NCBI GenBank assembly: GCA_038496445.1
Contig: JALMLS010000453.1
Span: 233,875-297,874, forward strand
Length of the DNA stretch: 64,000 nt
Direction: 5' to 3'
Source of the DNA: Trichosphaerium sp. ATCC 40318
Taxonomy: Eukaryota; Protista; Tubulinea
Made by a program: the position numbers and the translations under genes. The notes beneath the pieces were generated by a model, which saw nothing but the letters and a program-made list of their open reading frames with translations, did no database searches and had not been told where the DNA came from. The first letter of the stretch is position 1. The number at the start of each line of letters is the position of its first letter. Positions 49,416 to 51,740 of this stretch are shown here, in pieces.

Positions 49416-49852
49416 AATGATGTGATACCTAATTCTCACGGAAGTCCAATCGGCATGATCACTCTATTTTAGATTGGGTGCGATCTTGTACGACAACAAC
49501 TTTTGGTTTCATTTGGAATGGGTCCACGTAAATCGATGAGAGTAAAAATCGTGTAATTTTTTTTGTAATTCAGTTCATTGAACGAGGCTTTGATCAAGTT
49601 AAGTGCTCGTATTTTGAACCTACCTTCTGTACAGATTGTCAAGATCAGAGCGCTCCAAAAAACCGAAATAGCGTAAATCACTTCATTGAAAAGATTTATA
49701 AAGTTTATTTGGAACTAACCGCTTCTAGTAATTTTCTTGATAAGACTATGAACTTGAAAAAAAATCATATCATAGAAACAAACGTACAAGCAACAACAAC
49801 AGCTTGAACAAAGAAAACAAACAACCCTCTATATCGTAACTTAAAAACGTGC

Positions 49853-51419
49853 ATGTCAAAGAACAAGAACAACAACGATAAAACTCACATTAATCTCGTT
49901 GTAATTGGTCATGTCGATGCAGGTAAATCAACAACATGCGGTCACTTGATCTTCAAATGTGGTGGTGTCGACAAGAGAAGAATGCAAGTATTGGAACAAA
50001 AGGCAGAAGAAAAGGGCATGAAGTCATTTGCTTACGCTTTCGTCATGGACAACACTGAAGAAGAACAATCTCGCGGTGTCACAATCCAAACAACAACCAA
50101 GCAATTCTTCACGAACAACTACCACGTAAGTCACTTTTGCTTTATTACAGCGCCTCTGGAACCTTTTTTTCTGACTTTGTTGTTTAGTTTACGATCATTG
50201 ATGCTCCTGGACACCAAGATTTCATCAAGAATATGATCACTGGTACCTCCCAAGCCGACTCGGCATTGCTTGTCGTGCCAGCAACAAAGGGAGAGTTCGA
50301 AACTTCCATCTCCGCAAATGGACAAACTCGCCAACATGCTTTGCTCGCTTACACTCTTGGTGTCAAGCAATTGATTGTTGGTGTAAACAAGATGGACGCA
50401 AAGACTGTCAACTACGCTGAATCCAGATACAAGGAAATTGTCGCTGAAGTCTCAGCCTTTTTGAAAAAGTACGCTCAACAACTTTACATCCATTTAGTGT
50501 TTTTTATCCACTAACATTTTGCACAGAATTGGGTTCAACATTAAGCGTGTTCCTTTCGTTCCAATCTCTGGATTCGCTGGTGATAACATGACGGAGAAAT
50601 CAAGCAACATGTCATGGTGGAAGGGCCCAACATTGCTCGAAGCACTTGACAACTTGAAGCCTCCAAAGCGTCCTACAAACAAGCCATTGAGAATGCCAAT
50701 TCAAAGTGTCTACAAAATCAACGGTGTCGGTACTGTTGTCGCTGGACGCATCGAAGCAGGTCTTATCAAAGTCGGCCAAAAGGTGAAACTCGCACCGTCT
50801 GGTTTAACGGCTGAAGTGAGATCTATTGAGATGCACCATACCCAGATGACGCAGGCCGGTCCCGGTGACAATGTAGGTGTAAACTTGAGAGGTGTCTCTG
50901 TAAAGCAAGTAGAACGTGGTACAGTCATTGGTGAGATTGGTGCTTCAGTACCTCTTGCTGAAGTGACTGAATTCGTTGCTCAAATCATCATCATGCACCA
51001 CCCAAAGAAGATCTTTGCTGGATACAGCCCGGTCCTTGGTAAGTTCTCTTTTTAGCTTTGGCTATTTTAATACTTACGTTTCTTCTTTTCTAGACATTCA
51101 CACTGCTCATATTGCGTGCCGCTTTGCCGAACTCTTGACAAAGCTTGATCGCAAGACGAACGAAGTGACAGAAAAGAACCCTGCTTACCTCAAAAAAGGT
51201 GACTCTGCAATGGTGCGCTTGATTCCTACCAAGCCACTTTGCTGTGAAGCCTTCAAGGATATGCCTCCTCTTGGTCGTTTTGCAATCCGTGATATGAACA
51301 AGGTACCATTTCTTTTGTTTAACTACTCATTGTTGTTCCTTCACGTGCTTACTTTTTAAATCTAGACTGTGGCTGTAGGTGTCATCAAATCAGTTACCAA
51401 GAAGGTTCAAGATGCTTGA
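49853..51419 (+). CDS. EEF1A: Divergent translation elongation factor EF-1alpha with an EFL-like segment (5 exons)
   Basis: [100 protein letters not shown]. Ends SVTKKVQDA*. Confidence 0.92.
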
Positions 51420-51740
51420 AAACCCGCAACGATTACATCTCAGTGCTTTTTGCTTTGGATCGTGTTCCTCAAAGCAAAATAGATCAAATAAACCTTTTTT
51501 TAGACCCTTAAACAATAGTTCCTTTTTGTTCGACTGTCACTTACTGCACCATGTAATGTTGCCGTTTTGTAACTGTGAAGACTAGTAGTTTATCTTTACA
51601 ATACAACAATAATATTTTGGGATACTGCAATTCTAACATAAGTGTAACCAAAATAGTACTTATCTAGAATTGCATTATGAATCTTTTTTGAGGTTCTATT
51701 CATTGTATCATTCACGCGCTTACAGTTATTTTCTTTGTTT

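Follow-up and report, generated by a model that had tools for sequence, protein, structure and literature searches.

A divergent, multi-copy EF-1alpha paralogue carrying an EFL-like segment in the genome of Trichosphaerium sp. ATCC 40318

The window analysed here is a 64,000-nucleotide stretch of the Trichosphaerium sp. ATCC 40318 genome (contig JALMLS010000453.1, positions 233,875 to 297,874), whose plus strand carries, at window positions 49853-51419, a five-exon gene ending in a TGA stop codon and encoding a 442-residue GTPase of the EF-1alpha family, which we call the W type, or W. EF-1alpha and EFL, the elongation factor-like GTPase class of Keeling and Inagaki, stand in for one another in different eukaryotes, and how they came to be so distributed has been under debate for twenty years. 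An earlier, sequence-only reading of the locus had quoted motifs of both factors from one protein at 50020-50345. These strings are present once a 62-nt intron (50126-50187) is removed: residues 58-100 then run from SFAYAFVMD to DAPGH, and GQTRQHA occupies residues 136-142 (50320-50340).

Exon 1 (49853-50125) encodes residues 1-91, with the P-loop GHVDAGKST, switch I and a beta-hairpin, and exon 2 (50188-50468) residues 92-185, with DAPGH and NKMD. Exon 3 (50527-51038) covers the end of the G domain and domain II, exon 4 (51094-51302) domain III, and exon 5 (51366-51419) the final 17 residues and the stop. Translated exon by exon, the gene matches Pfam families in the order GTP_EFTU (6e-19 for exon 1, 7e-24 for exon 2), GTP_EFTU_D2 (exon 3, 2e-17) and GTP-eEF1A_C (exon 4, 2e-24), as expected of an EF-1alpha; its length also falls within the usual range of about 440-460 residues and there is no N-terminal extension. 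The four introns are all GT..AG and 55-63 nt long: intron 1 (62 nt, phase 0) as given above, intron 2 at 50469-50526 (58 nt, phase 2), intron 3 at 51039-51093 (55 nt, phase 1) and intron 4 at 51303-51365 (63 nt, phase 0). The nucleotide-binding motifs read from the translation (GHVDxGKST, RGxT, DxPGH, NKMD and SG, the last as ISGF) are all intact, so W, to judge by its residues, is most likely still active as a GTPase and still a carrier of aminoacyl-tRNA.

The gene is expressed. Contigs of four public RNA runs, from at least three studies, splice out exactly these four introns, with the joint 50125>50188 of intron 1 found in contigs of runs X1, X2 and X7, introns 2 and 3 removed in all four runs, and intron 4 removed in a contig of run X3. 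An apparent off-by-one 'TA..GA' joint at intron 2 arises because position 50527 is A in the window and G in the sister copies. The 5' untranslated region spans 49772-49852 on the plus strand, its start being set by a run X7 contig that begins at 49772, immediately after the template-switch oligo tail GTATCAACGCAGAGTACGGG, and the transcript reaches at least 51479, in an X1 contig spanning 51364-51479.

We searched the whole assembly (70.3 Mb in 642 contigs, the window lying on the contig designated C58) for further copies. By blastn, the window matches copies on C86 (two), C419, C134 and C388 at 90-94.5% nucleotide identity, and the matches are confined to 49660-51560 (plus strand), a duplicated unit consisting of the gene, some 190 nt before it and some 140 nt after it. 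Four copies of the W type (C58, two on C86, and C419) are intact and near-identical (about 99%), a count that may be inflated, since many paralogue matches in this assembly are paired, the two members being identical or nearly so and lying on separate contigs (C22/C89, C346/C184, C1/C541, C97/C112), which suggests that separated haplotypes or recent segmental duplicates were kept. Of the coding differences between the window copy and one of the C86 copies, 21 are synonymous and 3 non-synonymous (dN/dS 0.04), and the intact copies are under strong purifying selection.

Other copies show that the type can also decay. The C134 copy (L005) is intact but relaxed, with a dN/dS of 0.23 against the window copy and with core replacements giving GHADAGKS (V to A in GHVD), SHGVTI (R to H before GVTI) and GQTREHA; the C388 copy (L006) is frameshifted by a 10-nt deletion in exon 4; and two W-type relics on the minus strand of C28 (L020 2087-2242 and 2785-2931) read GQTCQHA and carry an in-frame stop between FAGGNMS and K. 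These would be the grounds for regarding the window gene as a decaying pseudogene or as an artefact of assembly or contamination, an explanation that we find scarcely credible given that this copy and three others are intact, spliced, expressed and strongly selected, and that the 64-kb surroundings are of even composition, with neighbouring genes that have the same short GT..AG introns. The C28 relics lie about 3.5 kb downstream of a canonical EF-1alpha gene (L020 8202-6463), on the same strand, and may be the remnant of a tandem pairing of W-type and canonical genes.

The presence of this canonical gene corrects one assumption of the sequence-only reading, which had taken the window gene to be the organism's EF-1alpha; W is instead an additional paralogue. 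The canonical gene encodes 439 residues and has five introns, none of them at a position in common with the W gene. It too is transcribed, as runs X1 and X3 contain a loose end with its sequence, and although both genes thus appear in RNA-derived contigs, contig depth cannot rank them by expression. Codon usage in W is biased in the same way as in the canonical gene but more weakly, the effective number of codons being 43.5 for W, 34.9 for the canonical EF-1alpha and 50.4 for background open reading frames, with a correlation of relative synonymous codon usage between the two genes of r = 0.71. The search of the genome that had been proposed also recovered the eEF1B-alpha exchange domain (PF00736) on C97 and C112, whereas an EFL query against the 70.3 Mb, an assembly that may be incomplete, returned no EFL, its matches being the W copies (the best), the canonical gene and paralogues at a greater distance. 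Runs X1 and X3 do include contigs with genuine EFL-type sequence (EFYTPNYHYT, DVLTGRVEQG); these runs look like mixed communities, and therefore the EFL in them probably belongs to another organism and not to the amoeba. Contigs of other elongation factor genes in the same two runs overlap IIDAPGH and parts of domain II, with loose ends at window positions 50194-50260 and 50731. An intron common to W intron 1 and EFL genes was considered and rejected, the introns of environmental EFL genes lying between DAPG and H or after TTK (41 loci).

The feature of W that calls for explanation is a patch at residues 60-91 (50030-50125, plus strand, in the stretch that begins SFAYAFVMD), which falls on the EFL side both by counts of diagnostic sites and by placement in trees. 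Across residues 56-99 the best identity to an EFL is 70% and the best to any EF-1alpha 52%, while EF-1alpha is nearer than EFL in every window past residue 132; likewise, of the 14 hairpin positions in W, 10 agree with an EFL hairpin and 5 with the canonical EF-1alpha one. We defined a diagnostic site as one at which the canonical EF-1alpha and EFL residues differ, each being conserved in at least 80% of sequences, and scored W against two EFL sets. The first was obtained by a DNA pattern scan of metagenome contigs for FYMDRQKEE, a motif within the patch itself, and gave 73 full-length open reading frames. The second, a guard against ascertainment bias, was gathered independently of the patch motif by a whole-protein word search with one EFL open reading frame. 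With the motif-chosen set, W is EFL-type at 9 of the 15 diagnostic sites within residues 60-86 and at 7 of 56 elsewhere (Fisher 4e-4, scan permutation 0.01). The independent set gives 7/10 inside the same residues against 6/45 outside (Fisher 7e-4), where 30 of the 45 sites are EF-1alpha-type, and 10/16 within residues 44-145 against 3/39 beyond them (Fisher 5e-5). The clustering of EFL-type residues exceeds chance, and the mosaic is statistically real. In an alignment with four environmental EFLs, none of the EFL insertions Ins1-5 (for example the 8-residue insert before GQTRQHA) was found in W. Identities, site counts and alignment thus agree with the description first made from the letters, of an EFL-like switch I segment in an EF-1alpha-like protein that lacks EFL insertions.

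Within the patch, however, the match to EFL is not clean. EF-1alpha-type Y61 and V64 lie among EFL-type A60, F63 and M65, and T80 and Q84 match neither family. Among the 208 positions at which canonical EF-1alpha is at least 95% conserved W deviates at 35, nine of which fall in residues 60-82. Three of these nine, K69E, R72Q and E73S, affect residues that never vary in canonical EF-1alpha and that the EFL sample conserves as well, so that an EFL donor fails to explain them. EFL-type states also occur beyond the patch, at P122 (codon CCA, 50278-50280, plus strand, the position of yeast A117), T130, Q140 (codon CAA, 50332-50334, plus strand, in GQTRQHA; the C134 and C388 copies have E) and N424, with EF-1alpha-type T109 and T111 in between.

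Close relatives of W are scarce. Database searches used single W exons or the 272-residue open frame of a sister copy (L004:1483-2301:-), the joined 442-residue sequence serving only for local alignments and trees. Among 1.84 billion cluster representatives, the best matches to exon 3 were canonical EF-1alphas, at 56-59% identity, and word searches of 5.8 billion proteins with the sister-copy frame and with the protein P0167 gave no close orthologue of W and nothing above 64% full-length identity. One candidate for the nearest relative, P0151, looked best and proved to be a chimeric assembly of canonical EF-1alpha. P0167 itself is an orphan divergent EF-1alpha of 434 residues from a JGI metatranscriptome, without close kin of its own, and is the only sequence retrieved with features specifically in common with W. 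It is sister to W in a FastTree phylogeny (support 99), and this position is not rejected in likelihood placement (log-likelihood difference, delta lnL, 2.4).

For the placement we kept a single backbone fixed and attached W in turn to every one of its 95 branches; constrained trees that were searched independently differed elsewhere. A quick tree of all columns under LG+C20 leaves W, EFL and EF-1alpha as a trichotomy (fixed-backbone delta lnL 1.85), but without residues 56-92 W joins EF-1alpha, with a value of 87 in the Shimodaira-Hasegawa-like approximate likelihood ratio test. Partitioned analysis separates the two signals, the patch grouping with EFL and the rest with EF-1alpha, which is not the outcome that would have refuted the sequence-only reading. 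The 37 patch columns place W on the EFL side with a likelihood weight of 0.99, the EF-1alpha stem being 11.5 lnL worse (approximately unbiased, AU, test 0.020), and the remaining 402 columns give the EF-1alpha stem a weight of 0.88, the EFL stem being 9.4 lnL worse (AU 0.034), AU values that are optimistic since the partition was set after the data had been seen. A partition-free scan returned residues 44-145 as the top EFL-favouring run (permutation p 0.043). The patch placement does not separate the stem of EFL from its crown and is divided among that stem, P0019 and the L109/L115 group. Requiring W and EF-1alpha to fall on one side of a branch, with the segment alone, costs 0.98 lnL (AU 0.50), a setup that is powerless because W may still sit beside the EFL branch.

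The sequence-only reading had offered three origins for such a protein, namely convergence, recombination between paralogues and an intermediate lineage, of which the last fares worst. A third lineage comprising W and P0167, branching near the EF-1alpha/EFL split and keeping ancestral states that EFL also kept, would be consistent with the trichotomy of the all-column site-heterogeneous tree, with the separate intron positions of W and the canonical gene, and with the lack of a close orthologue among the 5.8 billion proteins. Additionally, M65, E70, K83 and in part V76 are found in an archaeal-like outgroup (P0026, P0027, P0060, P0087, P0134) or in HBS1/eRF3. However, a single history cannot yield the difference between patch and remainder counted above, and it is on this heterogeneity along the protein that the idea fails. 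F63 and F86 are derived in EFL (the outgroup residues are W and E), yet the W type has them; P0167 lacks the patch; and W joins the EF-1alpha clade once the patch is removed. We therefore consider an old third lineage improbable.

The position of the EFL-like residues in the structure bears on the two remaining origins. Numbering in W is that of yeast eEF1A (PDB 1f60) plus 5, and therefore W residues 79-84 (QTTTKQ) correspond to the yeast DIALWK loop at 74-79. This loop hydrogen-bonds eEF1B-alpha and is the most striking difference of EFL, which has aCTTKa in its place (Atkinson et al. 2014, PMC3938643). EFL also carries P at 117, where the yeast replacement A117V confers independence of eEF1B-alpha, and further contact or independence sites are D35, T106, Q249, D250, G255, DCHTAHI and MR (PMC3938643). 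In W, DIALWK is replaced by QTTTKQ; A117 corresponds to P122, as in EFL; Q249/D250/G255 read Q/S/N, so that the D250 and G255 sites are altered; DCHTAHI is largely retained as DIHTAHI; and MR has become MN (GN in EFL). The patch and P122 thus map onto published contacts, and the EFL-like residues sit on the surface that meets the exchange factor, where W keeps only part of the full set of EF-1alpha docking residues.

Our preferred account, held with moderate confidence, is that the W type, a working EF-1alpha paralogue that is divergent, expressed and present in several copies, acquired its EFL-like surface by parallel remodelling. A paralogue freed from eEF1B-alpha-dependent recharging, a route also proposed for EFL, would then have undergone parallel substitutions that rebuilt the docking surface at the DIALWK loop, at the A117, D250 and G255 sites and at the R of MR, most of the changes leading to the residues of EFL. 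With its canonical eEF1B-alpha docking loop lost, W probably exchanges nucleotide without eEF1B-alpha, as has been proposed for EFL. The protein might serve as a second carrier of aminoacyl-tRNA or have a non-translational role, of the kind suggested for divergent EF-1alphas (PMC3699394).

The alternative is ancient gene conversion or recombination, in which about 100-140 bp of EFL (codons ~56-91) overwrote a divergent EF-1alpha paralogue in an ancestor that held both factors, with EFL being lost later and the tract diverging. This would account directly for the phylogenetic conflict between patch and rest. The tract is contiguous, of a length typical of ectopic conversion and flanked by residues conserved in both families, and its 3' limit coincides exactly with the exon 1 boundary. 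Nearly all patch residues outside NTEEEQS occur in some natural EFL, that of Spizellomyces reading FFTNNYHYT, and W alone among the non-EFL sequences retrieved has the hairpin TTK.FFT.NYH. At least one amoebozoan, Copromyxa protea, has EFL (PMC3699394). The patch is as much as 70% identical to EFL, about the identity that the rest has to EF-1alpha, as a transplant would give. To reach its eight EFL-type replacements in a stretch of 27 residues, canonical codons would have to change at about 14 nucleotides or more, a heavy burden for convergence. These observations favour conversion over parallel remodelling. Pythium ultimum, whose EF-1alpha has been remodelled at the same loop, has an EFL of its own and so is not a clean case of parallelism, and the retention of EF-1alpha-type residues at the D35 and T106 contacts and through most of DCHTAHI weighs against independence of eEF1B-alpha.

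Several details speak against conversion, however. The 70-Mb assembly yields no EFL donor, the patch is not nested within any donor clade, and the AU values that express the conflict come from the partition chosen post hoc. Simple transfer does not provide for residues foreign to both families (K69E, R72Q and E73S, with T80 and Q84 fitting neither) or for EF-1alpha-type Y61 and V64 within the tract, nor for EFL-type P122, T130, Q140 and N424 outside it, past EF-1alpha-type T109 and T111. P0167 already has two of these outer states, P122 and T130, and the intron position between YH and YT occurs in 0 of 41 intron-containing environmental EFL genes. Thus, because the assembly has no EFL donor, the patch holds foreign and interleaved residues, and the loop has been remodelled independently, in part toward the same residues, in P0167 and in Pythium ultimum, we judge convergence to be likelier than a chimera, while conversion is a possibility that we regard as unlikely but serious.

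The genome also contains EF-1alpha relatives of other kinds. Further EF-1alpha-like paralogues lie on C185, C206 and C194 (L008-L010), C346 and C184 (L012, L017), C1 and C541 (L018) and C6 (L015). In this further family domain II is retained and the nucleotide-binding motifs are broken, examples being GHVDNGTST with THMD and without DxPGH, GESDSGKST with IQDIPS and TQMD, and GPTETGKST; the C6 paralogue retains GNVDAGKST and DAPGH. By these motifs, they look like pseudo-GTPases derived from EF-1alpha. The genes on C22 and C89 (L013/L014) are eRF3-like, that on C57 (L019) is HBS1-like, and a second gene of eRF3/HBS1 type lies on C94 (L016). In the eRF3-like sequence, switch I reads AFIMDTNEEER, which is similar to that of W.

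The significance of the W type is that an otherwise EF-1alpha-like protein has an EFL-type contact loop and A117 site in a genome that retains both the canonical factor and its exchange factor. Freedom of EFL from eEF1B-alpha, the proposed key difference between the two factors, has never been tested, since EFL resisted expression and failed to complement yeast, and no natural eEF1A free of eEF1B-alpha had been reported (Atkinson et al. 2014, PMC3938643). W therefore offers a small natural set of substitutions with which independence of the exchange factor could be tested. We suggest, tentatively and with doubt, that W is a natural EF-1alpha which recharges with GTP unaided by eEF1B-alpha and shares the work of translation with the canonical factor, the 32-residue patch and P122 being responsible; if that is true, W would offer a living model for how an EF-1alpha-like protein took its first step toward EFL. 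If the patch instead came by conversion, it would be the molecular trace of an EFL lost in this lineage and would support ancestors that held both factors.

Compared with known systems, W is built like canonical eEF1A, whether that of yeast (TEF1, PDB 1F60/1IJE) or the copy on C28, with the same three-domain architecture, length and G1-G5 motifs, without EFL insertions, and with 58-64% full-length identity to the best public EF-1alphas. Unlike them, it has the DIALWK loop fully replaced and GQTRQHA in place of GQTREHA. To EFL it is alike at residues 60-91 (SFA.AF.MD ... TTK.FFT.NYH) and at P122, T130, Q140 and N424, the EFL aCTTKa patch and GQTRQHA having QTTTKQ and GQTRQHA as their counterparts, and it is to the same surface that the proposed freedom of EFL from eEF1B-alpha has been attributed (PMC3938643). 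It differs from EFL in domains II and III, which are EF-1alpha-type (DIHTAHI, not FVR.GR). P0167 has FAIRDM, P122 and T130 in common with W, but it has GQTREHA and a loop remodelled otherwise (DISLCKMHT), is without the EFL-type patch, at whose 37 residues a hand count from the alignment gives 15 changes, and has an overall identity to W no higher than that of canonical EF-1alphas.

The divergent EF-1alphas of lineages with both factors (Pythium ultimum, Spizellomyces punctatus and Fragilariopsis; Kamikawa et al. 2013, PMC3699394) resemble W in their accelerated change at functional sites, and in each of them the DIALWK loop and its tryptophan have been remodelled. We compared the sequences in the supplement of that paper by eye, outside all computations. 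The loop reads DIACDK in Spizellomyces and DISHKN in Fragilariopsis, while the Pythium ultimum protein has SFAYAWVMDN and EVTMKEF, with A60, M65, T81 and K83 common to W and EFL and N67 also in common with W. The divergent EF-1alpha of those lineages is their sole EF-1alpha and is found together with EFL; W, by contrast, is multi-copy, stands beside a canonical EF-1alpha and eEF1B-alpha in an assembly where no EFL was found, and is much closer to EFL in sequence.

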